A stretch of DNA of 64,000 nt, taken from the sequence record NC_027364.1. One strand, 5' to 3'. The position numbers and the translations under genes are program-made. The notes under the pieces were generated by a model. That model ran no database searches, had not been told where the DNA came from, and saw only the letters and a list, made by a program, of their open reading frames with translations. Positions 8,336 to 37,460 of the stretch are shown here, one piece after another; position 1 is the stretch's first letter, and the number at the start of each line of letters is the position of its first letter.

Positions 8336-8618
8336 AGTTCGGTGACCTCTAAAGTTGAGTTAATGTAACTAACATATAAAATATGAATGAAATATAATAT
8401 AGACTATATATTATCAGAATTATATAAAAAGTCAAGCCCCTATCACTCCTTTTTTCGAAGTCGCTAAGGTTACCCGCCCTTTAGCCCCCTACGCATTTTG
8501 CCATAGTCCAATCCCTTTTATTTCAAAAAAGTCAAGGGATTACCTATGCATTTTTTTAACGCATAATTTTAAAAACGCCTTGACTTTTTTCTGAATCAGT
8601 ACTAGATCCCTTTACGCA

Positions 8619-11600
8619 TTAATCCTTCGTTACGCTAACGATTATCTGTGTATCCCCGTAGTCCTGCCATACTTCCACGCCATCGGTCGCCCTGGTTAGT
8701 CGTGCTGTCATCTGCTTAATGGTCTTAGGCTTTAGTGGAACCTGTTGCAGTACTGTACGCATAGCATCATTGACGTTATCATGTACGCCTGCAATAGTAC
8801 CTAGAACGCTGTATACTGTATAGAACATATGTATGTACTCCTGATATAGTTAAGGCCGCTACAAGGCGGCCTATGATGTTTGGTGATGTGTAACGCTTAC
8901 AGTCCTAAGATAGTGCGTGCTTCGTTACGTTCCGTACACAGCTGCATGATGTGAGCAAGTAAGTCCTTGCTAATGTATCCGTTGTCCATAGCTTCACGGA
9001 TAGATACATCATAAGCACCGAACCCCGTGCGAACGATACGCACATCATTCAGGTTAGTATTATAGATACCGCCGAGATCAACGGCTTCGAATACTACATC
9101 AACAGAATATTCATTGTTGCCATCGTGGAAGTTTTCCAGTGCAATAGTATTGGATACCGCCCAACGTTTGCAGTTTCCAATGATGCGGCACTGTTCCGGT
9201 TGGATAGTGCCATTACTTACAGCGTACTCCAGTGCATCTTTACCGAAAGTCCGAGCCAGTACTAAAACGTCAGCGAAGGAATTGATTGAGAAGGTCATGA
9301 TAAAACTCCTTAATTTAGGAGGGAGAACCATTTCCCCCTCTCTATGTAAAACATTATACTTGATTCTAAGTACTATGCAAGTACTTTTTACATTTTAATT
9401 CCTGGATTCAGGTAACGGTGAGATCCATATTCTGGATAGGTTTCGTTCCAGTACTGTAAATCGATAGTACCTTTCGCGTTAATCTTGTCTACCAGCTTAT
9501 TCATCTTAGCGTATACTACGTCAGCATCGATGCGTTTAAAGCCAGTAGCTTTAGTGAAGTAGTAGTGATTTGCTTCACTATCATTAAGGATATACCGAGC
9601 ACCGTTTGCAGTCTGTGCGATAATGATTGAGTATTCTACTTCCCGATCCAGACCGTCGATGAATACAGATGAAACATTGGTACGGATGAAAGCTTTAACG
9701 ATAGCGATTGAAGTACTCATTTTGAATCTCCTAACTTTGTGGGCCGTCGCACCATTGCCGCCCTACGAGATACATTATTGCAGTACTGATATACTTTGTC
9801 AATACTTTTTTATTAATAGTTTTAGTTCCACCAGCAGATAGTTACTCACCGTTATTAACTATATATTTTGGATACACTTATGCACCCTGTGGGCTGATTT
9901 GTTTCTATGCGTATATAATAGCAAAGGGACTGACCGGAGTCAATCCCTTTTTTATTCTTTTTTGTTAGATGATTCTCCAATCATCAACGATCATGGTAAG
10001 ATACCGAACCAGTGATTCGAGTGATTCGTGTTCTCGATAGTCTGCCGCACCGCCAGCGGTACAAGTACAGCCGATTAAGCCGTTTTGCAATTCCTTAATC
10101 TGTACATCGATAAGGTTGGCTTTAGCTTCTTTCAGTACTTCAACCAGGGCGAGAGCGATAGACATAATGTTTTACTCCAAACTATTGGCGGGAGAACTAT
10201 TCCCCCGCTCTATGTAAAACATTATACATTACTGGTTAGTACTGTCAAATAGTTTTTATGAAATATCTTCGATGTAGTCGGCCCATTTCATTTTTTCAGT
10301 ACTGTCAATGGCTACCGGATTATTTGGATCAAACCATTCACCATTACCGCAATACATACCAACGGCTACGGTTTTATAGCCATCCTGGGCCGTACACCAC
10401 GACATTGCACGATAGATATGGCCTTTAACTGGTTGCAGTACTGGTAACGTTTTATGGTCTTCTACGTAGGCCATAGCTTGAGGATTTACCCGATATTGTG
10501 TGAATTGTTCCATTATGTTTCCCCTTGTAGTTAGTAAAGTTATTACATCAGTACTATCAAGCTATGTCAATAGTACTGAAATAAAACTTTTAGATTAGAT
10601 TATTGAGGCCGTCAATGGTAGACTCACTTTCTTCTTTCTCCCATTGTCGGTAGTACTTCCATGCTTCATGATAGGTGGCGATTAGTTCATCTTTTTGATC
10701 CTGGTTACATGCCAGTACTGAATCACGGTGAGCGGTGTTATAGATAGAATCGAATGATTTCTTCTCTTCTGCCAGGTTAGCTACTTCCCGCATCAGTTCA
10801 TCAAAGTTAGCCATTTTATTACTCCTTTTAGTGGGGGAGGATATCTCCCCCTATGCAAAACATTATACTTTGTTTTAGTTATTATGCAAGTACTTTTTTC
10901 ATATAAACATTAAATTCTACACCGCCGTAACCTTCCACGATGATATGTTTTGCGTTATCACGTTTGCACATAGTGAAACCATCGTTTACGTGTTTTGCAT
11001 TTTCCAGGGCGACATCACCGATAGCGGCACATACAGCACTAATAACGATATTCCGCAAAGTACTGGTATCATTAGCGGTCATAGTAGTTTGCATGATTAC
11101 GTTGTCGTATACGTGTGCATTGATAGTGATTTCGATAGTGTTCATGGTGTATCTCCTGGACTGGCGGGAGAACTATTCCCCCGCTCTATGTAAAACATTA
11201 TACGTTAATCTAACTACAATGCAAGTACTTTTTAAATTTTATTTCCGATATAGTCTGGCCTGTTCTTTTCGGTCATACGCTTAAGCATTTTTTGCATATG
11301 GCTTATTGCTTGTAGTGTATCCTCTTCCAGGGATGAATCGAGATAATCAGGATCATTCTTCACCTTGCAATGATTATGATAGCGTAGTACTGCCAGTACT
11401 TTTTTAACTTCTTCAACTGTCATAATAAGTACTCCACTTCGTTAGCTTTCAGGTTAGTATCAATCATCAATGGTTTTTTGTAGTTCACAAAACGATTAGT
11501 TTTTTCGATAGCGAATCCCATATAATCCAGCTTACTAACAGTACATTCATTCTTAAAAACTTCTTTCGCTGCATCGATGGCTGATTGCATGGATAACCGA

Positions 11601-14600
11601 CCATCTAAATTAATGTTTCCAAATGATCCACCAGCAGAAGTAGGATTACCGTTCATATCTTTAATGATCATAGTAGCGGAGTAGCTGGACATAATTTTGT
11701 TTCCTTTTAGTATCGGGGAGAACTATTCTCCCCTTGATGTAAACTATTATACAGTACTAATATACTTTGTCAATACTTAATTACGTTTAAAATGATATGT
11801 GCCTTTATCATCCTGTACGCCCCATACTGATTTACCATCAACACCAGTGAAGCCGGATTGTAATTCAATATGGAAACCATTATTATCAACTACAAAAACT
11901 TTTTTATTTTCATCCCGATAACATTGATATTCTGAATCAACATTAAAGGCCGCATCATTCAGAAGATTGGAAGCGTAAATGCAAGTCATTGTAGTCATGA
12001 TTTTATTCCTTATTGCCAGGGAGAACCGTTTCCCCCTCTCGATATAAAACATTATACTTGATTCTAAGTACAATGCAAGTACTTTTTTAAAATAGTTTTC
12101 AGTACTGAATACTTATATAATAGATACACTTCCGCACCCTATGGGTCAGTGAGTTATCTCTCAATGAATATATAATAGCAAAGGGACTGACCGGAGTCAA
12201 TCCCTTTTTTAATCTTTTTTATCGTGTTATAGTTACGGCTTTTACATCACGCTTTTTATAGTACTGATTCCAGATATTGCGGGTTAAACCGTAATCAAGT
12301 ACTTTAATAAGGCCGTTGCGATCCTGGCCGATATTCTGTTTTCTGATATCTCTTATCGTTAGTGTTGACAGTGTATCATCAACGTGTTGTAGTGCATCAG
12401 CAAAGCGGTGCTGGCGTTCAATAGCATTACGTTTAATATTGTACTTTAATTCGTTGCACGCGTTAACGTGCTTCACACTGCCTTTACTTGCAGTACTCAA
12501 CCGATCCATAACAATAAACATATTATCAGGATCGCTTAAATGCATATGCACTTTAGCGAAGAACTGTTTCAACTGAGGGCGGTCATAGTCTAAAAAATTC
12601 CATACCCTACATTCTGTTTCATTTTGTTCTACACCCGCATCACAATTCGCGACCTTGATCACTAACCGATCATTTAAAGCGAAAACTATACGGGAAGAAC
12701 CCGCACCGATGATCTCCAGACCAGCTAACCGACAAGCTGAAAGGATCTCTTTGTTGGTTTCCATTGCTGACAGGGTACGGATGAATTTAGTATAATTACG
12801 CATTGCATGTTCTCCTTGAGTTAATGAAACTATCTTACAGTACTTTACTATCAATGGCAACTACTTTTTTTACACTAACCGCGTGAATCACTTCCTTAGT
12901 GTTTTTAGTACTGAATACTTTCGCCGTGCCTTGTTCTACTGCAATACGATAACGACCGTTAACATCAACCATATTAATAAAGTCCGGTGTACTAAACCGA
13001 GTAGTTTTACATTTCAGTACTGTTAACAGTTCCACCAGCGATGTGGTTTCTTTGATACGTTTTTCTAAAGTAATCATTTTGTTTTCCCCGTGTTGGTATG
13101 TACATATAGTACTAAAACATTTGAGTACTGTCAACGTGATATTAGTTTTATTTTCTTATTATATTGTTGATGTTCATAAAGGTTTATCTTTCCTGTGTTC
13201 TCTATTACTATTCTGTTGTTAGTGTCTACATCGATTACACGCAGTTTTCCGTTGCTTAACTTCCTTGGTAATAGGTTACCATTAATAAACTCATTAGCAA
13301 GCTGTACGGCCTTTGTGATGATTCTCTGAGGTGCTTTATAGTGTACCCGCAAGATATTATCTTTAGATAGTTGTACCTTAATCATTTTAGTTTATCCTAT
13401 AAAAAAGGCGGGAACTGATCCCGCCGTGTTGTTAGTACTGCAAGTTATTAGATAACCTGTCGGCGTTTACTATATACTGTTACACGATTACCCTTACGGT
13501 CGTGTCGGATCTCTTTCTGGTTGCGTACCAGTTCACTTGGACGCTTCAGGTTTGCCAGGTGATCCGCGTGAGTCCAAGCGGTATGGTTTGTCTGTACTTT
13601 GATATCAGAATCAGCGATAAACTCATCTTGTGCATCAAGTATTGACGCCAGTAAATCCGCTCGTTTTAGTTCTGCTGCTGTTAGTACTGGCTCCGGTGAA
13701 TTCACAATATCAGAGATCTCTTTGAACTGTACGGCCCAGCGTTGACCTTTCGGTGCATCTTTGCCCATGTCTTTAAATGTTTCGCCTTCCTCGCGTGCAA
13801 CAATACGGGCAGCTTCACGGGTAGCGTAGAATTTAGTAATCATGGTATACATCCTATTAGTTGAGTTAGTACTACAAGTTAGAGTCTATTATAAAGTACT
13901 ATCTGGGCAATGTCAAATAGTACTTTAAATGGATTCTATTACATGTCTTTCTTACGTTTTACATCGTGGTAGCGAACTGTTATTTCTTTGTTGATCTCTT
14001 CCTCGATGCGGTGAATAACTGTTTCTTTCGGGTTGAAACCTATAACGGTTTCTTTAATGATCTCCAAGCCCGTGTATTCTCCTTGTGTACCGTAACCGTA
14101 AGTAAAGGTTTCATGTCCCAGGTCTTCCCAGCGGTCGCCAATTAACGCGGACACGTAGCAAGAGTGGTAAGTGTTACCGTTCCGATCAGTCCAGCGATTA
14201 ACTTTAATGTCAAAGGAGGTTACAATTTTCAGTTCTACTTTCTGGGTAAGGATCATAGCCATTTTTATTTCTCTCTCTCTTTGTTAGGAGGGGAACCGTT
14301 TCCCCTCGCTTGATGTAAACTATTATACAGTACTAAGATACTTTGTCAATACTTATTTTTTGGAAAGTTTACGCATTAATTCTACGCTTTCTTGTGAACG
14401 TTTTGCTACCTGGCAATCTGTATGGGTAGTAAACATTTTTGTATAGTCTGACGGTTTGCCACCGAACCGAGCGGCACGCTCACGGGCACTTGGAACTAAT
14501 ACGATTTCTTTCTTACAGATAGTGCACTTAGCCATTTTTATTTCTCTCTCTTTGTTAGGAGGGGAACCATTCCCCCCTTGATGTAAACTATTATACAGTA

Positions 14601-17600
14601 CTAAGATACTTTGTCAATACTTAATTATTGTAAATGCAGTGAATAGTGATAAAGTTTTTACGACCGTAAACCTGCAAATCAATATCAATGTAGTGCTTAT
14701 CAAGTACATCCTCGACGCTTAACGCGGTGTCGTGAATATCTTCGTAGAATTGAGGATCTACAATCTTGCTTAAGTCATCCGGCGTTAACTTATCGTTAAG
14801 CCATTGAACCGCCTGGATATCTGCTTCACGTTTCCAGTCTTCCAGGTTAGTAGTCAGTACTTGCTCGATTTCGTTAGCTGTCAGTAGAATCCGCATTTTT
14901 ATGTTTCCTTATCAGTAGTTGATGTAAGTATTATACTCGTTTACTTTCTATTGTCAATCTTTTTTTATCAGGGGAGTTTTTCGTATGTCTTACTCCTGGA
15001 CTACTTAACGGGGTTACTTGTTTTGTTCCCCGTCCTGATGTAAAACATTATACTTGATTCTAAGTACAATGCAAGTACTTTTTAAAAATAGTTTTACTTA
15101 CTCATATTAACAGGCTTGAACGGTGGCAATGTAAGATCATGCGGGGTTAAACTATCATGCTTTGCCCACATACCGGAATCCCTACGGAATAATACCTTAT
15201 TGTTTTTTATACGATAAAAGTTACCATTATCAGTGTTTTTGTACCATATCATTTTCATTTACTCCTGGTTATGTCGTTATTAAACATTATACGGGGTTAT
15301 AGATAGTTTTCAAGTATATTTCAGTACTAGCCACCAGCATATAATAGATACATTTATGCACCCTATGGGCTGATTTTTTTCTATGCGTATATAATAGCAA
15401 AGGGACTGACCGGAGTCAATCCCTTTTTTAATTCTTTTTAAACTTCTTTCGGGTTGCGATATGTGATAGCGTTCGGGTACATTTGTTTAATGTTATTCCA
15501 TGCCTGGTTAACATTGTAACCACTTGAGCGAATCAGTTGGTTACTACCGACACCTTGAAACACTACTTCGAATAAGAATTCTTTCATGCTTTCACCTCGC
15601 TATCTGCTTTACCTTTACGCCAGGACATTACTAATTGTTCGCGTTGCCATAAATCGAGTGATACAAAAAGTTTTGCGGTATCACTTTTAGGATACTCGCC
15701 AGTAGTACCTAACCGATAAAACAGATCTTTCAGTACTGATAATTCTACTTGAATCATTTTATTACTCCTGATTGATTTAATACTTCTACTATTGCATGAA
15801 TGATCATAAGTACAGCTAAAACAATAATCATCGGATTCATTTGCATAAGCTGTACTCCTTCTATTAATCTTTCAGCCAATGATCTTGAATGAATTTTTCA
15901 CAGAATCCCTGTTTCATGGATTCCAACAGGCGTTCGCGGTGAGCGTTTGCGAATTGCTCAGTACTATGCGTTACGCCAGGCTGATAACGTGATACCCCAT
16001 CCGGTCCGATGTATTGTACATCCCACGGTTTTTCGTTAGTATCAGACCATTTACGAACGATTAGTTGACCTTGCATTTTTCTTTCCTCTCAGTGGGGAGA
16101 ATCATTTCTCCCCTTCATGTAACTTATTATACAGTACTAGATTATCTTGTCAATAGTTTTTATTCACCTTGTTTGAATTTAGTTTTCTCCATTGATTCCA
16201 TGATTGCAACCAATACGCCGTGGATCTCGCTTAACGCGGAATCACTGAAAGCATTAATGAATAGTCGATCATTCTCGCGAATATTTTTAATGTACTTTTC
16301 AGCAGTAGTTGCGAATTCATTCAACGGTAGATCAAATGCTTTATCCCATGATGGATGGCGTAATTGTAACAGTACTGGATTATCACGATCACCAGGGGAA
16401 AACGTACCAGTGATGAAACATACGCCCGGAATACTTTCGAACTGGCAACGGACTTCCTTTGTGATAGTAGTATGAATGTACATTTATTGTTATCCTCTAT
16501 TAAATTAATATTACAGTTTATGAATCAATTCTTTATCTAAGCGATAGCGTACATTATTAATAGTAACGGCATTGTTTTTAATGCTACGCTGTACAGGTCC
16601 ACCAGCAATAACAAATGTTGCTTTATTACCCCGAACAATGATAGCACTTCCAGGATTACCGAAATCATCTTGTACTAAAATACTTGATAAGTTTTCCATT
16701 TTCATTTCCTCTTAGTAGGGGAAGATGTTTCCCCTTGATGTAAGTACTATAACACTACTGGATAGTACTGTCAATACTTTTTATCTCATAGATCTATGCC
16801 AACAATTACGCGGGGGACGTTTAAAAGTACTATCATGATCCTCCTGGCAAGTTATGCAGTACTTACATCCCTTAACGGCCTGGCGTCGTTTCTCAGGGAT
16901 TATATCGCCGCAGTCGAGGCAATGTATCAGTGATTCTATTTGTGCGTTAATTTGCTTTCTAGCGTGGTTAACGGCGGCCTGAATCACTGCGTTAATCTCG
17001 TCTTGTTCGGCCCCATCTTTCGCGAATCCTACAGCCATTATTTTAACCTCATTATAAAAATACTATAGTACTGTAATGCGACAATAATATTACTTGTTCT
17101 TACTTTTTCCAATCCACATGATACCACATATTCATCCCCATATGTGCGGAACGATACACCATGAAAATTTTTATACACTTGCACTACTAATCATAACCTT
17201 TCGTCTAACCAACTGCATAGAATTATACTACTTTACGCAAATTGATCAAGTATTGATCAGATCATTTTTTGATCAATATTATACAGTTACATTTGTGCAC
17301 CCTATGGGTTAGTGACGTTCTCGTCTTGATGTAAGTATTATGCCAGTACTTGATGATATTGTCAATAGTTTATTTTAATTTTTTTCTGTCATTGATTAAT
17401 GCTTTCAGTACTATACTAATGATTTGCAATGATTCATCAATGACTATAAAATTATTCTCTTTCATTAGATGATAGTTACCATTGATTGTATATTCTAAGG
17501 AGTACTGTTTACGTTTAATTTTTGATAATGTTTCTATTTGTTTTTGTACTGATTTCATGCTAATCATTGTTAAACGTCCTGTAACGCATTCTAACGAGAT

Positions 17601-20600
17601 AAACGGTTTAGTACTGGCATTGTATAGGGTAATGAATTAAAGCCCACCAGCGTTAACCAGTGGGCTATAATCTTACATCTTGCGGATAATCTTAACAGTA
17701 TCTTTCACCGATTTACCGTCTTGCTGGCATTGCTCGATCATTGCGTATTGTTCTGCTGTAAGATCCTCGCCAGTTTTTGCCAGTACTGCGTCGATGAATG
17801 AATCCAGTGCGATCATTTTGTTTCTCTCTTAGGTTAAGTTAACTACTGTTTATAAAACTTATTATACAGTACTATCAAACGTTGTCAATATCTTTAATAG
17901 TACTGGTAATATATTTTAGCGGTAATCGTCGTATGCTTTATTCACCTGGCGAATGTAACTTTCAAAGGCTTCGTCTACCGTTTCATACTCCCGAACATAA
18001 TCACCATAGGAAACTACATACATACCTTTTTGATCTTCAAACGACATGATGATAGAATCCAGGCCGATGATTTCAGTTTTTGCGATGATAGCCATTTTTA
18101 ATTCCTTAGTAGTGTAGTTGATAAAAGTTATTATGCCAGTACTATCAATCAGTGTCAATAGTACTGTGATAATATTTTTTAGTTAATAATAGTCAGTGTA
18201 AAATTGTAATCCCCTGCCTGGTATAGTACTTTATCGCCGAACGTTCCAACACGTTTCATATTGCAATAGATACCCATAACACTTTTTACATCTTTGATAT
18301 TCCGAACGCCAGTAATATCCTTGTTTAAATGATCGTGATCAGAAAATAAAACTTGTTTTGCATTTTTCAGTACAGTGCAGATATTAGCCATTTTGTTTTC
18401 TCTCTGTTAGTGGGGAGAATCATTTCTCCCCTTCATGTAACTTATTATACAGTACTATAATCTATTGTCAAACTATTTTTTTATATTATTCGAAATCTTC
18501 TGGACCGGACTGATAATCATCTTCACCGTATGCACTTTCTAACTTCTCGCCAGTGTGATCATCAGTTAGTGAATCATCCTCATAATTCACGTCTACGCCT
18601 ACAATGTAAAACTGGCTATCGTCTGGATCATTGAAATTAATTTTCTGAATGTTTACAATAACTGTATTGATGCCCAGGACACAGCCATCAGCCGTTACAA
18701 AGTACTGATAGTTTTCACAACCGCCTGAATTGAAACCGTAATTGATTTCGGCCCGACCATCATTTAAACGCAGTGCCTGGGCGATGATTTCGTTTTCAAA
18801 GTTAGATTGAGCAATTGAGATAGTCATGATTCGTTTCCTTATTACTAGGGGAAACCGTTTCCCCTTTCGATGTAAAACATTATACGCTTATTGAGATAGT
18901 TTGCAAGTACTTTTTATCAAATACTTTAAAATAGTTTTCAGTACTCAAACATTATACAATAGATACACTCCTGCACCCTGTGGGCTAGTGAGCTATCTCT
19001 CAATGATTATATAATAACAAAATGGCTGACCGAAGTCAACCACTTTTTTCATTTATTTTTTAGCTTTAAGTACTGCGGCCTTTCGTGTCATGCCTTGCTT
19101 GATGTATTCCTGTACTTTCGCTTTACGTGCTTTAGCTTTATCTGCTTTAGTTTTAGGAGTACTGTAAACTATACCGTTAGGATTCATTTAAATCACCATA
19201 AAGAATAGATAGGTTACTAACAACGCCGCGATCAATGCACCGACCAGGGCCGAACTGTAATAAGCTAAGGATCTCATTTTTTAGCCTGAAAATAATGTTT
19301 AATTTGTGCGGCGGTCAGTGCACAATTACGCAGGAAGTTTTCTGTATAACTGCGGCGAGTATTAAAAGAGAATTGACCTTTACCGTTACCGATAGTTACA
19401 TCCATCCGAGCGTTGTATTGTTTCATTTTGTATCTCCTGTTATCGGGGAGAATCATTTCTCCCCTTCATGTAAAACATTATACAGTACTAAAAACTAATT
19501 GCAAGTATTATTTTAAACTTTGTGCGACTAATTTCGCACGGTCAATCATATACTGCCATTTTTGGATCTCTTCTGGCAGAAAACGATATTCACCAATAAC
19601 AATAGTGATACACTTTTCAGCTTGGTCAATGTATGTAGTATCAATCTCGACTTGAACGGGTACACGTTCGCCGTATTCAGTCCCTGGGATAATGCAATCA
19701 TTATCATAAGTTACAGTAGTAGTAGTGTCTTTGATTAAAATTGTTTCCATTATACTTTCCTCGTTAGGTGTAAGGGGAACGTTTTCCCCTTCATGTAAAA
19801 CATTATACAGTACTGAAAACTAATTGCAAGTACTTTCCGAAAGTAAATGCTCATACGCTGCATTAACTACATTTTCAATAACCGACTGTACAGAAAGATC
19901 CCCCACGTCCTGGCTATAGTAGAAATTGCTTACAGTGGTGTCATCGTATGCAAATACTTTACCAGGTACTGCATCAATCACATACATATTAACCTTTAAG
20001 ATGTCGATCTTATCCTGTACAGTAAGCATATTAATTAACCTTTTAAGTACTGGCTTAAGTAGTCTTTTTGATCTTCGGTGATTGCAGTCATCTTCCCTAG
20101 TACTGGATTGATGATATAATCCCCTGTAACGTCCTGTAACGCATTCTCAGGCGGTTTAACGGCTGGGGTAGCCATAGCCATTGCCTGGACTTGTTCGACG
20201 CTGTAACGCTCATAAAGGCGGCATTCTTCCGGTGTTAACATAGCATCAGTACGCTTCATCGGTTTAATGATGCTTTCGATCTCATTCAGTACTTGATTAA
20301 CGTTCATGGTATAATCCCCAATATAAGCGGCCTAAATCGACCGCTAACGATGTTTTGATTAATAGGTGTAAGGTTGACGCTCAAACAATGATTGTACGCT
20401 GTACGCCCCGCTAATGGGCTTCGCTGGCAAATCAATTTTATATTGTTCACGCTTAAAGATAATAAAACGGCAATTGTTTTTAACATCAAAATTGATTGAA
20501 CGTTCCAGGAGTTTTCCATCGTGCACAAATACAAGATAACCGCTTGGTACTTGTTTTGTAGAACTGGTTGCAACCATAGACCGACGAACATGTGTACCTG

Positions 20601-23600
20601 CATCGATTAAAGTACTGATATTTTTCATTTTACTATCCTCTTAAGTTGATTTAATTTCTTTCCCCTATGCAGACACTGTATCAAAGTATCTGCATAAAGT
20701 AAAGCTAATTAAAGATCTTTTTTACGTTTTACATCCTGTACAGTACAATGCAACGGGATAGACAAATCATTACACAAACGAGTAAGGGAGGTTTCAACAG
20801 TATCAAGCCCGTCTACTGATTCCTTTAAGAGATCAAACGCCGTTTGTTGATATGCATCTTCATAGCCATAAGTAAATGATTCAACCGCCAGATCATTCAA
20901 ACCGTTATCCAGTTCAACGCTTACATGACAAGAATGATAAGTATTGCCATATGAATCAGTCCAACGTTTACCGTCAACATTGATTGCATGGATTGCAGCC
21001 AGGGAAACGGTATTGATGATAGTTTTAGCCATTTTAGTATTCCTTAAATTAATATGTGTCGTCTTGATAAAATCTATTATGCCAGTACTATCAAACTATG
21101 TCAATAGTACTGTGATAATATTTTTACTTACTTTCTTTCGCTGCTTTATATGTTGCCACTGCCATAACCACATCAGCACGAACAAAGTTTTTAACCGTGT
21201 CACTGTAATAATTGATCGCATCATCTATATCTGCGAACGTCCGATACATACCGCACCAAGATACTTTATAACCTTCTTTCACTTCTGCCAGTTTAACGAT
21301 AGTCTTGTTAACTTTGATTTTAGTAATGATAGCCATTTTAGTTTCCTCATTATCAGGGAGAACCATTTCTCCCCTTGATGTAATGTATTATACTTTATTC
21401 GATTTACTTTGCAAGTACTTTTTTTAATTTAATTCATCCAGGCAAAGGATACGCTCAACGCCCAAATCAGTTAAACTAATCGACGGCACTTGATAGGTTT
21501 CAATGTATGCTACACTTGCCCACTGACCGAACTCATTAACGGCCCAGGTATTCATTGCATTTTGCAATTCCGCACCTGCCTTGTTAGTAATGACTGCAAC
21601 TACTTGTTCGTTGCCAGTAGTACCAGATACGCGAGTAATGATAATAGCCATTGTTTTGATTCCTTTGATTTGGAAGGAGAACCGTTTCCCCCTCTCGATG
21701 TAAAACATTATACGCTAATCTCTTAATCGTGCAAGTACTTTTTATTACTTTTTGCAAAATACTTTAAACGCTCTCAATCGCATTCTAACGACCTTAACGC
21801 CACCAGCTAGGGCGATGTATCAGATAATCAGTTTAATGCGTTAGAATCGATTCTAGGCGGTGCTGGTGGACTGGAATACTACAGACACAAAAAAGCCCAC
21901 TGTTTAAGGTGGGCTAGTGATTCAGTACTTTAATTGTTATGCTTCAACTTTGCGATGAGCTTCGATCCATTCCTCGCGAGTCATACCGCTTTCTTTGATA
22001 GCGTCCAGTACTACCGCAATGCAGTTACCGCGTACAGGAATCATATGTTCTTCCCCGTTATCAAGTACTACAGTAACACGTTCTTGAATCCATTTTTTAG
22101 GTTTAGATTCTGGCTTATCTTCACCATACTTAACCGCCAGGGCTTTATGTGCCATTTCTACAACTACTTCCAGATCCAATCCAGCCACCGCCGCCTGGAT
22201 ACTTTCGATTGTTGCTTGCAGTTCGGCTTCACGGGCTTTTTTCTGTTCTTCCAGTTCTGCTACCTTTTTGGCTTGCAGTTCTTTAGCTTCACTGTACGCA
22301 ATGTTAAAATTGTTGCGTACTGCTTTCATGGTATCGTTATCCAGGTCAGCCAACAATTCAGCAGCAATAACAGTATCGTTTGAAATCAGTGCTTTCAGGA
22401 ATGATTTTACATTAGCCATTTTATAAATCCTCAATTAAAGTTTAGTTTACGTTTATTAGTGTATCAAAGTTTTATCGACGTGTCCAGTTTTTCGTTCGAC
22501 TTACTGGCGGTCTACTTAGTGCTCCCCGTCTTGATGTAATACATTCTACGCCTTTTTGTGGTAATGTCAACTACTATTTTAAAACTATTTTTAAAGTATG
22601 CAGTACTACGATAATACAAAAACAAAAAAGCCCACTGTTTAAGGTGGGCTAGTGATTCAGTACTATATTATAAACAGTTAATTACTCCGGTGTGCGTTAC
22701 TTTCTCAGTATCCATAACCGTGACCGATCCACGCTTAGTACTTACATCGTAATAAATTGTCGTGCTACCTTTTTCGTCTTCTTCATGGAACGGGCCGCTT
22801 TTAAATGCTTCTGGCTGGATCTCTAAATCCTTTAAAACAATCTCGCCAGTACTTTCATCTGTCATCGCAACAGTGCACTGAATGAATTTTTCACTACTTA
22901 CATCTAACGACGCATTAACAGCGAAAGAGGAAACAGATAAAGCCAGGGCGATGATTGCAATTTTCATTTGATTATCCTTAGTTACCAGGGGGAACCGCTC
23001 CCCCGTGCGATGTAAAATATTGTACAGTACTAAAAACTAATTGCAAGTACTTTATGATTTTTTATAAAACATTTCGGCAGTAATATTTTTACCCGTTGGT
23101 TGTACTTTATCCAGAATTTTTTGATGCCCTGGCCGTCCAAATGAATATGATCCGTAAACCGTAAACCAGTAGTTACCCTCAGTGTTTACATGTACAGCAC
23201 AATAGGGAACGCCCCGCGATTCATCACCAATAAAGTGTGATACCGTTCCCGTTACATTAGCAGACGTTGATTTGATTTGTTCAAGCATTTTCTTATTCCT
23301 TAGTTACCAGGGGGAACCGCTCCCCCTATGCAAAACATTATACGCGTTTAAAAACTAATAGCAAGTATTTTAATAAAAAGTATTTGAAAAATAATTGTTG
23401 ACAACTGCATCCAGTACTGGCATAATTACTACATCAAGACGAAACAGTCACTAACCCACCGGGTGCCGAGATCCGTCTATTAAATGATTCAGTACTTAAC
23501 AATAAAGGGGATCAATCGATCCCCTATGTATTACTTAGTAAGGTATAAACAGAAGTCACCTTTATTTGCTACGCCGCCAGTGTAACGCGATGAATAGTTA

Positions 23601-26600
23601 GAAACGTCCTGGACTTCTGCTATTACCAGTGTATCATCATTCAATTCGTCGCAGAAGCAAACGGCTGGATCTTTTACGCCGATCTTGTCGGCATGTTCCC
23701 GCATAGATTTAACCAGTGCTTCCAGTTGAGAAAGAGTAGTGATATTAGCCATTGTATTTTCCTCATTACCAGGGAGAACCATTTCTCCCCTCTATGTAAA
23801 CTATTATACAGTACTGAAAACTAATTGCAAGTACTTTTAATTAAATTCCATAAAATCATTCTCAACGTGCACAACAATTTGATTGTTTTTAAAGTCCGCA
23901 GCGAACTCGATGCAATCATAAACCGCTTTTTGTGTTACAATGCTATGAGTACCAATCGGATTAATAGGGGATTGAATTGTTTCAATCTCGTTCCCTTGCT
24001 CATTAACAATTAAAATATTAAACATCGCTGTTACTCCTGGGTAGTGTTAACTCGATATAAAGTATTATACGCCTTTATTGCTTAGTGTCCAGTACTTTTT
24101 AAAACATATTCATAAACACTACGCACATCATTGATCATCGCCTGGCGGTTAGCAGGTAACGCACCAGGATCGCCACTATCCCAGGCATTGATAAAACTCC
24201 CCAAATCATGAAAGATTTTATTCTGTAAGCCGATTAACTGCAATTCTTTTTCTTCAAGCTCTTTGATACGGTCAATTAAAAGACTCATTAGATAATCCTC
24301 AGTACTTAATTGTAAGATCCGCAACGGTTACAATAGTGCCCGTCTTCCTCGTCATCGTCAACGAATTGACCGACGAAATTATCTACTTTCTCTTTGAGAT
24401 TCTGATAATTGTTTTCAACTTCCTTTAGACGTTCCTGGTAGTATTCCAGGGCTTGCACATACGCCGCCTCAGCCGTTTTCGCTCTTAAGGCTAAATTCAT
24501 GCCACGCGTTTCATCGTACATCCAAAAGCCATCGGTGCACTCACTGATTGACAATGATTTGGTTAACACTTTATAGTCAATTACTTTGCTCATTAGATAA
24601 TCCTCAGTAAAGGCGGGAACCACACCCGCCATTGATTCAGTACTGAATGTTACATTCCAACCATTGCAGCACGGATCGCCGTAGTGCTATACTTGAATCC
24701 GTCCGGTGTTGTAGTAGTACCGTTGGCTTTTAATCTGCGGTACATACATTGGGCCGCAATATCTTTAGTTTTACATTGTGCGATGCAACTTTGAGCAAGC
24801 CGATATAATGACTCACCGTTATTAATCCACAATGAAACATTCCAATGAGTTTTGTTTTTGTGCCCGTTGTAAGTTTTAGTAGTAGCCATTTTTAAATCCT
24901 CGTTTAATTGAGCGGGAGAACCATTCCCCCGCCTCGATATAAAGTATTATACGCTTTTAAACTTAGTTTGCAAGTACTTTTTAAATTAATATGCGATTGA
25001 TTCTACTACGTCATCAATAACATTGAATTGATACTCGTTACCCTCGATCAGTGCCGTGATGTTCTCAGTAGTGAATTGATCCTCATATGCATTCTCTAAA
25101 TCACGGTACAACTTGCGGGACAATTCACGAATAGTATCAGTGAGTAGTTCCTCAAGCTCATTAACTAACGTTTCTTGTTTTGCGGTTAAATCAGTGTAAG
25201 CCGATTCAATGTACCCGCTTACAGTATTCTCATGCGAGTAGTGGGAGTGCGAACGCTTTACACTCATCGCCAAATCATCTTCATTCAGCAAGTGACGGAT
25301 TGAGCGATACTTAGTTAATGCTCTTACCTTGCGTAAAAACTTCACTGCGTCAACGTGGTCAGTACTGATTGATGCACCGTCACCCTGGGACCAAAAACCA
25401 CTGAATTGTATTTCAGCTTCATTAATGCCATATTCCGGTAGTACTGTTTCTTTATAGTATTCAATTTCACTTTCAGAAAAATAATTGTCGTTTGAGTTTT
25501 TTTCACGTTCCCGAACCAGTTCGATAGCTGACGTTTGTTGTTCTGCGTTCAATTCAGAAAAATCCATAACGAAAGTAGTAGTAGTGATAGTTTTCATTTT
25601 GTAACCCTCATTCAGTAGTTGATGTAAGTATTATACGCTTTTAAAAACATTTGTCAAACTATTTTATCAGGGGAGTTTTTCGTGTGCCTTACTCCTGGGC
25701 TACTTAACGGGAAGTTACTTATTTCGTTCCCCGTCCTGATGTAAAACATTATACGCCTTTAAACATAGTTTGCAAGTACTTTTTAAAAATAGTTTTCAGT
25801 ACTGAATATTAAAAAAGTATTGACAGCATTATCAAGTACTGGCATAATATACCACATGACAACAGCTAACCCACCGGGTGCACAATTGTAACTATACTAA
25901 ACTAATTTTTCTATAGATACACTCCCGCACCCTATGGGCTACGGCTTATCTGCCAATGAATACATTATGCCAGTACTGACAAAATAAGTCAATACCGGCA
26001 ATTGTAAAGATTTGTAAACTACTTATACTGCAATCGCGTCCAGGCTATAATAATAATAAGTGCCGTATTGGTGTACTTTATTACCTTTTATTTCAGTACT
26101 GAATGAATCCGAACGATTTGCATATGATGTTAATTTAAAGTACTTTGATTTGCTGATACGTTGCCATACACCACAGATCCGCTGTAAGTAAGTAGTTTTA
26201 TTCGTGGTAGTATCTTTTACGGTTTTAACTTCAGTCATATACATATTAGTCATTTTTATTACTCCAGGTTATAGGCGGGAAGAGTTCCCGCTCTCGATGT
26301 AAAACATTATACGCCTTTAAACATAGTTTGCAAGTACTTTTTATTCAAGTACTGCAATCTTTTTAGTACGGTACACGGTCACGCGGTTGCCCTTTCGGTC
26401 GAGCTTTATTTCTACCACTCGACGCGATACACTATCGGGACTTTTTAAGGCCGCTAACCAGTACTGTAATGATCTGGCTGTACTACGCTTTACAATGGCC
26501 CAACGTTTACCACGTTCCGATTGTACGCCCATATCTTTAAACGTTGCCCCGTCCTGGCGTGCGGCGATCCGAGCTTGTTCACGCGTCGCAAAATACTTAA

Positions 26601-27710
26601 TATTCATGCTGTTGCCCTTATCGTTGGTGTATGAATAAAACACTATTATAAAGTACTATCGCAAAAAATGATAGTACTTTAAATAAATTCTATTCTATTA
26701 CATTCCAACCATCGCCGCACGGATCGCAGTAGTGCTATACTTAAAGCCGTCCGGTGTTTTATCTTGTCCAGTCTGTTCTAAAAATAGCATCATATGACGG
26801 GCCGCATCATTACGATTAGTATTGGCGGCAATAAAGTCCTGGGCCAACCGATACAATCCCTCATCGTTATTAATCCAAAGGCTTACATTCCAATGAGTTT
26901 TGTTTTTGTGACCTAAGAACATTTTTGATTTAGCCATTTTTTTAATCCTCTTATATAGTGGGGAACTATTCCCCACCTGATGTAAAGTATTATACGCTTT
27001 TAAATTTAGTTTGCAAGTACTATTTTTTCAGTACTGGTAAACCTTTGATCTCACCTGGCTGTACTTCCTCAAAGGCGACCGCCATCATACGGCTATCATC
27101 TTCCTTACATTCTTCCATCGCATCACAAAAATGATTAATAACGTCCGGTGCAACGTCAACCACATCAAACAAGCCAACCTCAGTGCAACGGCTTAAAGCG
27201 TTTAATAGGTCAGTCAGTGCAACGGATTGAGAAACAGTTAAAATAGTACTCATACAATTAATCTCTTAATTATAGTGGGGAACTATTCCCCACCTGATGT
27301 AAAACATTATACGCTTTTAAACTTAGTTTGCAAGTACTTTATTAAACTTATTTGTAAATTTTGCCACTGTCAGCCCATACCAGGAAACGAGGCATATTAT
27401 CCCATGCATCTTGTTTTAAATTTAAACCGTGCAATTCCTCAGTAGTTGCCATCCCTGGTACTGGCTTACTACACACCGCGAAATTTTCGCCCATATACTG
27501 ATAAACCATCGTCAAATCATTTGAGATCATCTTATGGATCATCGCATCAAGCATCACGGTAGCGGCGTATTGTTCACGCTTAAGCGGCAGCATTTTAATC
27601 AGTTCGCGGTATGCGTCAATGTGAGTTTTAACCGTTGCCGCCGGAAGATCTTTCATCTCGTCGCGGAAGTTAACCAGGTTAGCAATAATTTTGGTGATTT
27701 GAGTTGCCAT
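8619..27710 (-). CDS. Cluster of about 60 small, mostly monocistronic early hypothetical genes
   Basis: ORF track plus extra short ORFs (e.g. 15094..15258, MKMIWYKNTD..., 54 aa). Most follow a promoter/hairpin/RBS cassette. True starts are often downstream of the track start (9298, 11998, 19426, 21336, 21651, 23752, 24288, 24593, 26607, 26937, 27710). Confidence 0.8.
12219..12803 (-). CDS. Protein-kinase-like protein (minimal ePK/APH-like fold)
   Basis: Gly loop IGAGSSRIVF, VIKVA lysine, QNETE glutamate, DIRKQNIG catalytic loop, VLDYG; AAGGAG RBS supports the start at 12803. Confidence 0.75.
   Translation of the reverse strand: MRNYTKFIRTLSAMETNKEILSACRLAGLEIIGAGSSRIVFALNDRLVIKVANCDAGVEQNETECRVWNFLDYDRPQLKQFFAKVHMHLSDPDNMFIVMDRLSTASKGSVKHVNACNELKYNIKRNAIERQHRFADALQHVDDTLSTLTIRDIRKQNIGQDRNGLIKVLDYGLTRNIWNQYYKKRDVKAVTITR
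13448..13852 (-). CDS. Hypothetical protein, paralogue of 26341..26607
   Basis: Both share (F/Y)ATRExAR..FKDMG..GxRWA and C-terminal DRKGNRVTVY. Confidence 0.75.
   Translation of the reverse strand: MYTMITKFYATREAARIVAREEGETFKDMGKDAPKGQRWAVQFKEISDIVNSPEPVLTAAELKRADLLASILDAQDEFIADSDIKVQTNHTAWTHADHLANLKRPSELVRNQKEIRHDRKGNRVTVYSKRRQVI
13939..14262 (-). CDS. Hypothetical protein, paralogue of 20709..21032
   Basis: Both share RWTDxxGNTYHSC, FTYGY and C-terminal DVKRKKD(M/L). Confidence 0.75.
   Translation of the reverse strand: MAMILTQKVELKIVTSFDIKVNRWTDRNGNTYHSCYVSALIGDRWEDLGHETFTYGYGTQGEYTGLEIIKETVIGFNPKETVIHRIEEEINKEITVRYHDVKRKKDM
14967..15039 (-). ncRNA. Candidate structured leader/small RNA, copy 1
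   Basis: Directly after a TTGCAT-16-TATAAT promoter, no ORF. Outer stem ATCAGG/CCTGAT, hairpin ACGGGG/CCCCGT, linker TAAGTAG, hairpin GGAGT/ACTCC. Confidence 0.55.
16781..17038 (-). CDS. TraR/DksA C4-type zinc finger protein (YbiI-like)
   Basis: MAVGFAKDGAEQDEIN... and CLDCGDIIPEKRRQAVKGCKYCITCQE match the family pattern. Confidence 0.9.
   Translation of the reverse strand: MAVGFAKDGAEQDEINAVIQAAVNHARKQINAQIESLIHCLDCGDIIPEKRRQAVKGCKYCITCQEDHDSTFKRPPRNCWHRSMR
20709..21032 (-). CDS. Hypothetical protein, paralogue of 13939..14262
   Basis: RWTDSYGNTYHSC, FTYGY, DVKRKKDL. Confidence 0.75.
   Translation of the reverse strand: MAKTIINTVSLAAIHAINVDGKRWTDSYGNTYHSCHVSVELDNGLNDLAVESFTYGYEDAYQQTAFDLLKESVDGLDTVETSLTRLCNDLSIPLHCTVQDVKRKKDL
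21937..22419 (-). CDS. H-NS/StpA-like nucleoid-associated protein
   Basis: N-terminal coiled coil (AKELQAKKVAELEEQKKAREAELQ), charged linker, C-terminal VVLDNGEEHMIPVRGNCIAVVLDAIKESGMTREEWI resembling H-NS [36 protein letters not shown]. Confidence 0.55.
   Translation of the reverse strand: MANVKSFLKALISNDTVIAAELLADLDNDTMKAVRNNFNIAYSEAKELQAKKVAELEEQKKAREAELQATIESIQAAVAGLDLEVVVEMAHKALAVKYGEDKPESKPKKWIQERVTVVLDNGEEHMIPVRGNCIAVVLDAIKESGMTREEWIEAHRKVEA
22474..22535 (-). ncRNA. Candidate structured leader RNA, copy 3 (5' UTR of the H-NS-like gene)
   Basis: Keeps GACGGGGA, TAAGTAG and GTAAG..ACGAAAAAC; the stem is CCAGT/ACTGG instead of GGAGT/ACTCC. Confidence 0.5.
22668..22967 (-). CDS. Small exported protein (signal peptide, Cys near both ends of the mature chain)
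   Basis: MKIAIIALALSVSSFAVNA signal; QC...NCL. Confidence 0.7.
   Translation of the reverse strand: MKIAIIALALSVSSFAVNASLDVSSEKFIQCTVAMTDESTGEIVLKDLEIQPEAFKSGPFHEEDEKGSTTIYYDVSTKRGSVTVMDTEKVTHTGVINCL
24650..24889 (-). CDS. Hypothetical protein, near-identical paralogue of 26698..26937
   Basis: GHKNKTHWNVSLWINN and TPDGFKYSTTAIRAAMVGM are identical in both. Confidence 0.8.
   Translation of the reverse strand: MATTKTYNGHKNKTHWNVSLWINNGESLYRLAQSCIAQCKTKDIAAQCMYRRLKANGTTTTPDGFKYSTTAIRAAMVGM
24986..25597 (-). CDS. Acidic hypothetical protein with an FSGFWSQGDGAS motif
   Basis: 203 aa, many E/D residues; own promoter-hairpin absent but a sigma70 promoter lies directly upstream. Function not assigned. 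Confidence 0.6.
   Translation of the reverse strand: MKTITTTTFVMDFSELNAEQQTSAIELVREREKNSNDNYFSESEIEYYKETVLPEYGINEAEIQFSGFWSQGDGASISTDHVDAVKFLRKVRALTKYRSIRHLLNEDDLAMSVKRSHSHYSHENTVSGYIESAYTDLTAKQETLVNELEELLTDTIRELSRKLYRDLENAYEDQFTTENITALIEGNEYQFNVIDDVVESIAY
25666..25740 (-). ncRNA. Candidate structured leader/small RNA, copy 2
   Basis: Same architecture as 14967-15039; substitutions fall mainly in loops and stems are retained. Confidence 0.55.
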
Positions 27711-27824
27711 CGTTTTAATCTCTCTTAAAGTGTAGCGGGAACACTTCCCGCTCTCGATGTAAAACATTATACGCTTTTATCAGTACGGTGCAAGTACTTT
27801 CTACAAATACTTTTAAAATAGTTT

Positions 27825-27917
27825 TCTTTCTATATAGGAGTACTATTATTCAGTACTGAATCAATCCAGGGGAACTATCTTTCTATATAGGAGTACTATT
27901 ATTCAGTACTGAATCAA
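27825..27917. repeat. Two 40-bp direct repeats separated by 13 bp
   Basis: TCTTTCTATATAGGAGTACTATTATTCAGTACTGAATCAA at 27825-27864 and 27878-27917; each holds two AGTACT. Confidence 0.9.
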
Positions 27918-28535
27918 CCAAATCACTACTACACCCCATAAAACGGCCTCAGACGCATTCTAACGCATTAATACACCTAAGCTATACATTTGCACCACTC
28001 CCAACAATCCAGGGCGTTACGGGCCGTTTAAACGCGTTAAATTATTTTCAATTATTTTGTTTTTAGGTATTGACTTGATCCTGAAAAAGCGTATAATTAC
28101 TACATAGACGCGAGAAAGCGGAAACCCCAGAGGGTGCGGAATTACGCCCAAAATTCAAGATATAAAAAAAGGATACACTCCCGCACCCTAGCAGGTAAAC
28201 GCACTTTCTCAGTACTGAATTATAGTACCATAGTCCGGCCCAGGATGGCAAGCAAATTAATTAAAACTTTTTTCATCCAGGGTATTGCTTTATTTTTCCA
28301 GTACTGTATAATAGTTCCATCAAGTCGAGAAAGACTCAAGCCCACCGGGTGCATAGTTACGCCCAAAATTCAGTACTGAAAAAATTTTTAAAAATATCCG
28401 TCCAGGCCGTTGACATTGCCCCCAGTTTATAAGATAATGATTCCAGATTCAGAAAAATCTAACTCCAGATACTGCGGGGAAACTATCCCCACGCGGTAGG
28501 GGAACTATTGGAAAAAACAAAATAAAATTTTGATT

Positions 28536-28647
28536 TAGCCGTCTATACTTCCAGACGTGTAACCATCTAGCCGTTTAGCCGTCCAAACGTCTAGCCATCC
28601 AGCCATCCAGAAATCTAGCCGTTTAGCCGTCTAGATGGATAGCCATC
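28536..28647. repeat. Eight copies of the octamer (T/C)AGCC(G/A)T(C/T) in an ORF-free region
   Basis: Copies at 28536, 28568, 28576, 28592, 28600, 28616, 28624, 28640. Confidence 0.9.
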
Positions 28648-29705
28648 TTTACTTCCAGACTTCTGGAGGGCTAGACATATCTACGTCCAAAATCCACCCA
28701 GGGTAACTACGCCCAAAATCCGTCAGTACTATACCATAGATCTATCTTTTGAAAGGGAGTATTCAGTACTGCCACAATAGCCCTCACTATGTTACCCTAG
28801 GAGGATGAAGACTATCATGTAGTACTGAATACTGTTAGAGGGAATCCACCAGCTTGTGCTGGTGGCATAATGCTTTAGATTAAAATCAGTACTGACACCA
28901 TTCTGTTAATATCAGTACTGTTATTACGATTTTCATATGAGGTTCAAAAAGATGTACCACCACAGGAGGAACTATCTTTTCTGTACTGTCTCACGACAGG
29001 AGGTAGAGTAAATGAATTGTTCGCAGCAACTCATCACCCTATGTAGAACATTATACAGTACTGAATCATAATGTCAATAGCTTTCTTTCATTATTCAGTA
29101 CTGATATTCTTGAGAACTACCCGACTACAAACATCATTATATCCCACAAATCATAAACGTCCCAACGTAAATTTCAACTTTCGAAGATCCAACTTTTATT
29201 TCATAGGTACTCCAAAATTTTTAGGATCGAGATTTAGGATGGAGTACTAACCAACTTTTTGCTGGAGCCTCAAGGGGTAATGGAATTTTACCCCGAAGGG
29301 TAAAGGGGTAATTGAAATTAAGGTGAAAGTAATAATTCAGTACTAATCATTGCGTGATTACTTTTGATTACATTTGATGTAATTTGAAAAATGGAAAAGG
29401 AGCTTGGAAACTACAAAGTACGGCAGACTTCCTCTGCCTACTTAGTGGCATATCAGTACTGAATCCTTCCCGTGCATTCTTGAGCATTCTTGTCTATACT
29501 AATCAGTACTGAATCATATATAATCATTCTGTGATTCTACGGTGCTCATATAAATGTTTATATATGATTACTTATGACTACCTATGATTACGGGGTTTAG
29601 CCTGGGGAGAATCCTAGTGATCGCATTTGTCCAGGCTGAATTTTAACAATTCGCCTGTACATAAAGGTTGTTCACTAGGAGCTTCCCCTGTCTACTTGTG
29701 TTTAA

Positions 29706-33810: not shown

Positions 33811-33858
33811 GGGTTTTCTTTATGGGGTAAATATGATATAATGAATAAGGAGGGAAAT

Positions 33859-35061: not shown

Positions 35062-35069
35062 GAGGGAAT

Positions 35070-36179: not shown

Positions 36180-36249
36180 CATAATGCCAGTACTCTGTAC
36201 TGGCTTTCTTATTTGTATTAAATATAGTATAACAAATAAAGGAGGGAAT

Positions 36250-37389: not shown

Positions 37390-37460
37390 TATAATGCCAG
37401 TACACTGTACTGGCTTTCTTATTTGTATTAAATATAGTATAATGAATAAAGGAGGGAAAT

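Follow-up and report, generated by a model that had tools for sequence, protein, structure and literature searches.

We describe here a short repeated element in a 64,000-nucleotide (nt) stretch of DNA (the window) from Escherichia phage PBECO4 (NC_027364.1, genus Asteriusvirus), a 348-kilobase (kb) Rak2-like jumbo myovirus to which positions 9000-29000 are 100% identical; window coordinates are those of the record minus 124,000. The element, of about 45 nt, is centered on the 12-nt core CCCANMGGGTGC and recurs 10 times between 9,882 and 28,352, each time behind a sigma70-like promoter. As judged by its pairing patterns and its position, it is very probably a transcribed element that works at the RNA level, as the initial annotation of this DNA had surmised: its first hairpin covaries, the partners of its GGGUG stretch change by transitions that keep the pairing, and it always lies near the predicted 5' end of the transcript. 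Given the copy number, the promoter strength, the stand-alone units and a core so invariant as to suggest one partner, the single mechanism we favor, if tentatively, is a set of abundant immediate-early small RNAs that would act in trans on a conserved partner.

The initial annotation had counted at least 10 copies, and exact matches to CCCANMGGGTGC in the window number 10, at the positions and on the strands it had reported, vs. 0.01 expected from dinucleotide shuffles (none of 100 shuffles reached 10); a search allowing one mismatch added no copy in the window. A covariance model built from 12 copies and run on the window with its filters off recovered the same 10 copies (30.7-58.3 bits) and one partial copy at 28171-28190 on the minus strand, with no other window match above 12.5 bits, and it scored nothing in the remaining 290 kb of PBECO4. 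In phage vB_Ec-M-J, the DNA homologous to the copy-bearing region is annotated as 21,525-base-pair (bp) 'Direct Terminal Repeats' at the left genome end, with genes reading inward, while the 20,993-bp repeat of fEgEco12 is confirmed by restriction digests (PMC13070987). Placed by homology, the physical end of PBECO4 falls at about window position 29,450 and the terminal repeat at about 7,900-29,450, and the stretch of elements from 9,882 to 28,352 maps entirely within it. Since no copy lies outside the terminal repeat, the element is specific to the repeat rather than a genome-wide word, with about 10 copies per repeat and roughly 20 per packaged genome.

Both the motif and its hairpin are kept in related genomes. 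A blastn search with one element returned 56 phage records (phages of Escherichia, Klebsiella, Salmonella, Cronobacter, Pectobacterium and Erwinia), with the copies repeatedly inside annotated terminal repeats; contig L007, from a Yersinia phage, also carries the element, and across phages of these seven host genera the 12-nt core is almost unchanged. When viral contigs were scanned for the pattern, RaK2, 121Q, GAP32, CBB and several further contigs of 350-380 kb proved to carry promoter-linked copies, and a few isolated chance matches came up as well; the covariance search over related phages that had been suggested with the first description yielded 103 matches, 87 of them distinct, from 20 sources. 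In fENko-Kae01, the 19.7-kb repeat holds 10 copies, 6 sense and 4 antisense, split as in PBECO4. The terminal repeat of Pseudomonas phage PA5oct, including both of its non-coding RNA loci, has no copy (best score 11.4 bits). A strict pattern scan of cellular genomes (185,579 species, one genome each) gave 12 scattered single matches in unrelated taxa, none in Enterobacterales, which score 14-26 bits, i.e. at chance level, and the element does not appear to be a copy of a cellular one. There was no Rfam match in the whole window at gathering thresholds; at E<=5, the region 9500-29500 gave 6 weak matches, none to the element and 5 away from the copies, the sixth being RT-6 (19.4 bits vs. a threshold of 46.7) at 25788-25856 on the minus strand, opposite the promoter of one copy (copy 7 below). 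ARAGORN detected no tRNA-like gene. A literature search for the 12-mer and its complement returned unrelated papers only, the motif is not described in publications on CBB, RaK2, fEgEco12, PA5oct and jumbo-phage genomics, and the literature searched held no transcriptome of an element-carrying phage. We regard the motif as real, strongly non-random, clade-wide and apparently undescribed in the papers searched.

Promoter, tail and start-codon counts were made on 76 unique copies from PBECO4 and its relatives. All 76 have a sigma70-like promoter whose -10 box ends 20-29 nt before the first core position (C1), so that the promoter linkage claimed in the initial annotation holds for each copy while its distance of 25-35 nt was slightly long. 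In 67/76 copies the promoter agrees with the consensus at 10 or more of 12 positions, and 53/76 have a TG-extended -10 box. We infer that transcription starts at the A of a conserved CAT, with a purine-rich first 15-20 nt, and on this prediction the element occupies the first 15-50 transcribed nt of a host-type promoter; such a CAT start and initial sequence resemble the early promoters N25 of T5 and A1 of T7, whose initial transcribed sequences are likewise purine-rich. The promoters themselves vary in type, four window copies having the -35 box within a terminator-like hairpin and others carrying AGTACT in the spacer, and the same types elsewhere lead directly into genes without the element.

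The predicted RNA begins with a 3-5 bp stem-loop that is found in about 72% of copies and missing in about 28%, with loops of 6-8 nt (GAGAAA, GCGAAA, AGAUAA, AGAACAA). In the alignment, two-sided changes occur in all 4 of its pairs (121 cells) and pairing is kept in 89% of cells, a pattern that none of 500 shuffles equaled. The earlier statement that most copies have such a purine-loop hairpin agrees with 7 of the 10 in the window, those at 9882, 15358 and 25870 having only an A-rich stretch in its place. A 4-nt linker then leads to the core, which can pair in two ways. In the mini-hairpin, R(-1)CCC pairs with GGGU10 over 4 bp (98.6% of cells paired) around a loop of 3 nt (AYA) or 4 nt (UAGA, UAUA, UCAA, UUUA), both lengths occurring within one genome; position -1, opposite U10, is A in 43 and G in 38 copies, and the double change of C3 to U and G7 to A has arisen twice, independently (L007:4521, L021:7801). 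RNAalifold predicted this helix unaided. In the second hairpin, GGGUGCR at positions 7-13 pairs in a fixed register with UGYRYCY at 18-24 to form a G.U-rich 7-bp stem with 89% of cells paired, the pairs being G.U or G-C and U-A or U.G. The partner positions read Y, R, Y, C, Y (T57/C17, A52/G23, T62/C5, C71, T57/C16) and vary near-exclusively by transitions, as pairing to GGGUG would demand; in addition, C12-G19 became G12-C19 in 4 of the 5 G12 variants. The count of 270 G.U vs. 11 A.C cells implies that the second hairpin exists only on the transcribed strand. Both folds use GGGU and are mutually exclusive, with mean energies of -3.2 kcal/mol for the mini-hairpin and -3.4 kcal/mol for the second hairpin, and this sharing of GGGU between folds of near-equal energy makes the core a candidate two-state element. 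The tail NNNANTGTA(T/A)C, said earlier to follow many copies, follows 7 of the 10 in the window, and the rest have CCGTC or ACGCCC. Conservation ends at about position 26; a TATAAT-like consensus occupies positions 24-29 (TANNNT begins at 24 or 26 in 44/76), and the tail after full copies is A/U-mixed, with 3.25 U among the 8 nt that follow the hairpin.

What follows the element was classified for 86 distinct copies: a head-on partner copy in 24, a terminator-like hairpin 8-55 nt away in 18, a further sigma70-like promoter in 30, and nothing detected in 14. Accordingly, 42/86 copies lead to a terminator or a head-on copy instead of an operon. The head-on pairs recur in almost all genomes, with spacings of 33, 44 or 51 nt, and the 30 downstream promoters lie 17-98 nt past the element, ahead of any gene. 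In the window, a second promoter precedes the gene after every sense copy, and four copies are antisense or in an ORF-free (open reading frame) stretch of 1.7 kb beside the genome end. The second promoters, together with these antisense and gene-less copies, argue that the element is not mainly the leader of a downstream gene. These results bear out the earlier remarks that four plus-strand copies fire against the genes, that those at 25870 and 25927 converge head-on, and that none leads directly into a start codon, the next feature being another promoter, a terminator-like hairpin or a partner copy. What had been missed at that stage was that the copies lie in the terminal repeat, that the clade conserves them, that the core has a second, alternative pairing, and that most sense copies are followed by a second promoter. 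The features in the window are as follows.

9915-9943, minus strand: promoter of copy 1, TTGACT-17-TATTAT with TG extension, -35 inside a 12-bp terminator-like hairpin
9866-9910, minus strand: copy 1 (core 9882-9893), 33.3 bits, sense, first hairpin absent; then a promoter at 9802-9774 and a gene
12172-12200, minus strand: promoter of copy 2, -35 box within a terminator-like hairpin
12118-12167, minus strand: copy 2 (core 12134-12145), 58.3 bits, hairpin UGAG-AGAUAA-CUCA; then a TTGCAT-16-TATAAT promoter and a gene
15391-15419, minus strand: promoter of copy 3, -35 box within a terminator-like hairpin
15342-15386, minus strand: copy 3 (core 15358-15369), first hairpin absent; then a Chi site at 15331-15338 and a promoter at 15313-15286
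17337-17365, minus strand: promoter of copy 4, TG-extended TTGACA-17-CATAAT, spacer containing AGTACT
17281-17330, minus strand: copy 4 (core 17297-17308), hairpin GAC-GAGAAC-GUC; then a promoter at 17249-17222 and the DksA/TraR zinc-finger gene at 16781-17038
19011-19039, minus strand: promoter of copy 5, -35 box within a terminator-like hairpin
18957-19006, minus strand: copy 5 (core 18973-18984); then a TTGCAA-16-TATAAT promoter (18906-18879)
23398-23426, plus strand: promoter of copy 6, TTGACA-17-CATAAT with TG extension, opposing the gene direction
23433-23482, plus strand: copy 6 (core 23455-23466), 55.8 bits, stand-alone unit
23506-23525, no strand assigned: two-way terminator-like hairpin AGGGGATCAATCGATCCCCT, 27 nt past copy 6, giving a predicted RNA of about 95-100 nt
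25820-25848, plus strand: promoter of copy 7
25859-25897, plus strand: copy 7 (core 25870-25881), first hairpin absent, head-on with copy 8
25911-25959, minus strand: copy 8 (core 25927-25938), head-on with copy 7, putative start sites about 100 bp apart
25964-25992, minus strand: promoter of copy 8, TTGACT-17-CATAAT with TG extension
28070-28097, plus strand: promoter of copy 9, TTGACT-16-TATAAT, in the ORF-free stretch beside the genome end and directed toward that end
28104-28153, plus strand: copy 9 (core 28126-28137), partner strand of the second hairpin ACGCCC
28171-28190, minus strand: partial copy, 16.1 bits, the second hairpin alone (AGGGUGCGGGAGUGUAUCCU) plus seven U, without the CCCA arm, of intrinsic-terminator shape
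28285-28312, plus strand: promoter of copy 10, TTGCTT-16-TATAAT
28319-28368, plus strand: copy 10 (core 28341-28352), directed at the genome end; a further outward promoter at 28410-28438

Among these, only the partial copy at 28171-28190 fits the definition of an intrinsic terminator (hairpin plus U-tract). We rejected an intrinsic terminator as the identity of the element itself: the stem of full copies is G.U-rich (about -3.4 kcal/mol), their tail is A/U-mixed, and the terminator scan did not call them.

Based on this layout, we propose that the copies are short transcription units within the direct terminal repeat of Rak2-like jumbo phages, which the sigma70 RNA polymerase of the host would read in its unmodified form. 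The RNA would open at the A of CAT, and its purine-rich stem-loop probably serves as a 5' stabilizer as well as a good promoter-escape sequence. The core would then fold as the 4-bp mini-hairpin with its 3-4 nt loop, or have its GGGUGCR captured by the downstream UGYRYCY, and the RNA would end at a nearby terminator, a head-on partner unit or the A/U-rich tail, or else read through past the next promoter. RNAs of about 50-110 nt from some ten strong promoters per repeat may in this way act in trans, displaying the core to a postulated clade-conserved partner, a host or phage protein, with the second hairpin as a built-in switch or as a 3' structure that hides or exposes the core. With rather less confidence, we can envisage a new two-state immediate-early RNA class that captures a host factor, or else the RNA half of an antitermination or attenuation system specific to Rak2-like phages; candidates for capture would be components of the transcription, RNA-decay or defense machinery during the first minutes of infection. 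Of the functions listed in the initial annotation, the best match is an abundant early RNA family, since over half of the copies stand alone without a gene to regulate; promoter-primed R-loop origins and DNA-entry sites gained no specific support and are disfavored because the pairs are convergent, not divergent, and some copies are directed outward.

Several observations speak against a family of trans-acting small RNAs. The promoters, the transcript starts and the RNA ends have all been predicted from sequence, and full copies have no U-tract that could end stand-alone RNAs. The folding energy is ordinary (mean z-score -0.8), with no difference between sense and antisense (p = 0.25); the equal energies of the two strands made the thermodynamic strand test uninformative. 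With GGGUGC near-invariant, the support for the second hairpin is mostly one-sided, and the alignment, being model-fitted, leans to the model structure. As the copies are paralogues, the cell counts exceed the number of independent events, and the promoter linkage may partly reflect descent. RNAs from convergent pairs would be complementary and could neutralize each other. A Pfam scan of 20 proteins encoded at 7970-27710, nearly all in the terminal repeat, found no RNA-binding domain and no partner. Lastly, the core is near-palindromic and is followed by a -10-like TATAAT consensus, both of which suit DNA-level readings as well.

An alternative that we consider unlikely is that the element acts in cis, as a leader altering its own RNA polymerase, either by processive antitermination of the lambda nut or HK022 put kind or as an attenuator under protein control, with the mini-hairpin as anti-terminator and the second hairpin as the competing pause or terminator. 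The constant position within the first 15-50 transcribed nt would suit such a leader, as would the four window copies that come directly after terminator hairpins containing the -35 box and thus mark new transcription units; two exclusive helices of similar energy are the standard layout of an attenuator, the partial copy with its second hairpin, seven U and no CCC arm is terminator-shaped, and the purine-rich loops of the first hairpin are reminiscent of boxB. The likeness extends to the lambda nut site (boxA + boxB) and the rrn leader (boxB-boxA-boxC) as a whole, each a short RNA signal past an early promoter with a purine-loop, variable-stem hairpin beside a conserved motif, the hairpin being dispensable in some copies as in the rrn leader. 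However, the loops have 6-8 nt vs. a GNRA-like pentaloop, and the conserved motif is itself a switchable hairpin. No sequence like boxA (consensus CGCTCTTA / TGCTCTTTAACAA) was seen by eye in the 87-copy alignments, on which no pattern search was made, the conserved linear part being CCCAYAGGGTGC; no N-like domain or other antiterminator-like protein turned up in the Pfam scan of the 20 proteins, although proteins of the N type are very small and readily overlooked. Over half of the copies lack a gene that could benefit, or meet a terminator or head-on partner 8-55 nt on, and most have no operon to antiterminate, while the window sense copies precede another strong promoter and only then the gene; full copies also have no U-tract. 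Nut- or put-like antitermination, which had been proposed in the initial annotation, may hold for the sense copies but looks less likely, given the lack of a visible boxA, the first hairpin being dispensable in about 28% of copies, and the many terminators and head-on partners. The put sites of HK022 are also cis-encoded, with two stem-loops near early promoters, and neither they nor the element need a protein in principle, but put is about 65-70 nt long, has longer stems and occurs twice per genome before long operons, whereas the element measures about 45 nt and has about 10 copies, many of them stand-alone; it was by this description that we set the two apart.

We are similarly doubtful that the core works as DNA, be it as an operator or roadblock shutting off a subset of early promoters, as a small non-template-strand hairpin that stalls RNA polymerase and brings in a factor, in the way of ops and RfaH, or as the -30 box of a phage-specific promoter that pairs with the TATAAT-like hexamer 11 bp on, in the style of T4 middle promoters. 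Its near-palindrome RCCC-N3/4-GGGT, perfect in ACCCTATAGGGT and ACCTTATAAGGT, would fit an operator, the C3/G7 double change keeps dyad symmetry, the intergenic DNA is dense with DNA-level motifs (AGTACT, Chi, promoters), and the RNA folding energy is unexceptional overall. Against this, spacers of 3 and 4 nt in one genome suit a hairpin loop and not a dimeric site on double-stranded DNA, A or G at -1 faces T10 where G-T pairs only as a single-stranded wobble, and the transition-only variation at 20-24 with 270 G.U vs. 11 A.C favors one strand only. The ops signal resembles the element as a 12-nt, orientation-specific leader signal of which part forms a tiny hairpin on the non-template strand; however, the core is unrelated in sequence to the ops consensus GGCGGTAGNNTG, which led us to reject an ops/RfaH-type pause signal, ops has nothing equivalent to the downstream pairing partner, and we identified no NusG-like phage protein. 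For a promoter box, the consensus T24 A25 T26 A A T after the element and the 11-bp gap fit T4 middle promoters, whose box lies 11-13 bp upstream of TAnnnT, but TANNNT is present in 44/76, leaving a usable -10-like hexamer in 58% of copies only, no copy occurs outside the terminal repeat, and such a box would not require a host promoter 20-29 nt upstream in 76/76. Phages of this clade do encode their own sigma factors (PMC7824862). Least probable in our view, and by a wide measure improbable, is that the act of transcription is what matters, with double-stranded RNA, R-loops or supercoiling serving replication priming, repeat recombination, DNA entry or end protection. This would account for head-on pairs at fixed spacings (33, 44 or 51 nt) in nearly every genome, for copies confined to a repeat that enters first and must recombine, for 10 Chi sites in the same 20 kb, and for two copies and a third promoter pointing to the physical end. 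An A/T-rich tail follows the element; a T4-type R-loop origin would combine a promoter with a downstream unwinding element and a persistent, priming RNA-DNA hybrid. A role of transcription as such would leave an invariant 12-mer with pairing constraints unexplained, convergent promoters have the wrong geometry for two-way priming, outward units would counter transcription-driven entry, and the majority of copies are unpaired.

Returning to small RNAs acting in trans, there is a functional likeness to titrating or decoy RNAs (CsrB/CsrC, 6S RNA, CrcZ and prophage anti-sRNAs, i.e. anti-small RNAs, such as AgvB), which share an abundant, repeated hairpin motif and a presumed stoichiometric action; they differ in carrying many motifs per RNA, whereas here there would be one motif per RNA from many genes. 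A CsrA-titrating RNA was rejected, with GGA at the loop positions 12-18 of the second hairpin in 31/76 only. The host-takeover repeats of SPO1 and T5 are similar in being long, direct and terminal and in being packed with short early genes and with numerous host-type promoters of great strength; to our knowledge, no conserved multi-copy RNA motif downstream of promoters has been described for the early regions of SPO1, T5 or T7. A more distant parallel comes from the related jumbo phage PA5oct, whose ORF-free terminal-repeat loci encode two highly expressed non-coding RNAs, ncRNA001 and ncRNA002, of 236 and 451 nt (PMC7318152), which are single-copy, longer and without this element.

Other candidates were rejected on more specific grounds. 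Transfer-messenger RNA (tmRNA) drew attention since bases 321-339 of E. coli K-12 ssrA contain GCGAAACCCAAGGUGCAUG, resembling the GCGAAA first-hairpin loop plus the core CCCAYAGGGUGCAU, but the covariance model score is insignificant and we take the match to be a coincidence. A leader peptide is not supported, with a start-like codon at 17-19 behind a Shine-Dalgarno-like GGGUG in 43/76 only and unconserved frames of 1-22 codons (by eye). A tertiary contact, in which AGAUA of the first-hairpin loop would pair with UAUCU of the second hairpin, is not supported, since loop and partner classes are unassociated. The core motifs of hammerhead, pistol and hepatitis delta virus-like ribozymes are absent, conservation ending at about position 26. 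Mimicry of repeats of the clustered regularly interspaced short palindromic type (CRISPR, types I-E and I-F) gave no fit, and an EcoKI site (AAC N6 GTGC) is contradicted by a gap of N7 and a varying flank, both judged by eye only.

Rak2-like jumbo phages are common among the phages of E. coli and Klebsiella and are in development for therapy, and almost their entire terminal-repeat 'takeover' region lacks annotation. An invariant core that is kept some ten times, downstream of the strongest host-type promoters and on DNA expected in first, makes the element a prime candidate for a function in the first minutes. If host-factor titration proves true, it would add an RNA-based takeover mechanism to the known protein-based ones; if RNA polymerase is modified, the element would be a new antitermination signal. 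The structure alone, if confirmed, would give Rfam a new phage RNA family and provide an annotation marker for the terminal repeat and early region of the clade. Its kind, a phage non-coding RNA or leader, is familiar; its architecture and copy pattern are new.

The promoter regions have further recurrent features. The 12-bp terminator-like hairpin (AAAGGGATTGACTCCGGTCAGTCCCTTT and variants) with a TTGACT -35 box in its stem lies at 9923-9950, 12180-12207, 15399-15426 and 19019-19046, and, having the -35 box in the stem, one cassette terminates one transcript and begins the next; further cassettes on the minus strand at about 50119, 51909, 52833 and 63122, outside the terminal repeat, lead straight into genes. 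A second promoter class combines TTGACA or TTGCAA, a 16-nt spacer, TATAAT and an A/T-rich upstream tract (11746-11773, 18879-18906, 25748-25775 and about 20 more, on the minus strand), with eleven 12/12 matches in 20 kb; several have a leader that begins with AUCGAGAGGGGGAAACGG, which resembles the initial transcribed sequence of T7 A1, and a hairpin of its own. The window has 269 sites of the palindrome AGTACT vs. 21.6 expected (12-fold, the next palindromic hexamer being 2.7-fold), of which 130 are in the terminal repeat vs. 7 expected there, and the density elsewhere in the genome is 1.5-3.1 per kb; the sites fall in promoter spacers (CAGTACTGGCATAAT), overlap -35 boxes or lie 20-30 nt past the element. 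AGTACT is the center of the E. coli SlmA-binding consensus, and a link with SlmA is conceivable.

Nearly all of the 20 proteins scanned lacked a Pfam match; those above the cut-off were a DksA/TraR zinc finger and DUF7247, with weak kinase-like, DUF7217 and DUF3846 matches below it. The zinc-finger protein (16781-17038, minus strand) has the C4 finger of DksA/TraR (E = 1.6e-10), which makes it a candidate for binding the secondary channel of RNA polymerase, and the weak protein-kinase match under the cut-off belongs to the protein at 12219-12662 (minus strand). Chi (GCTGGTGG) occurs 11 times in the window vs. 0.5 expected, 10 of them in the terminal repeat (9828-28865) and one at 54774. Eight of those in the repeat are on the minus and two on the plus strand, one plus-strand site lying about 600 bp from the putative end and the pair at 28846-28865 forming an inverted repeat; under the Chi orientation rule, such a layout would attenuate RecBCD entering from either physical end. 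An ORF-free array of about 12 units of the 8-nt sequence TAGCCGTC (variants TAGCCATC and TAGACGTC) at 28536-28634 lies about 0.8-0.9 kb from the putative end, downstream of the three outward promoters, and may be a set of protein-binding sites that would serve packaging, replication or DNA entry. Farther away, about ten consecutive ORFs of 298-433 amino acids, possibly paralogues, run on the plus strand from 33841 to 46100, opposite to the surrounding genes, and this block coincides with the guanine-cytosine skew turning positive at about 30-46 kb.

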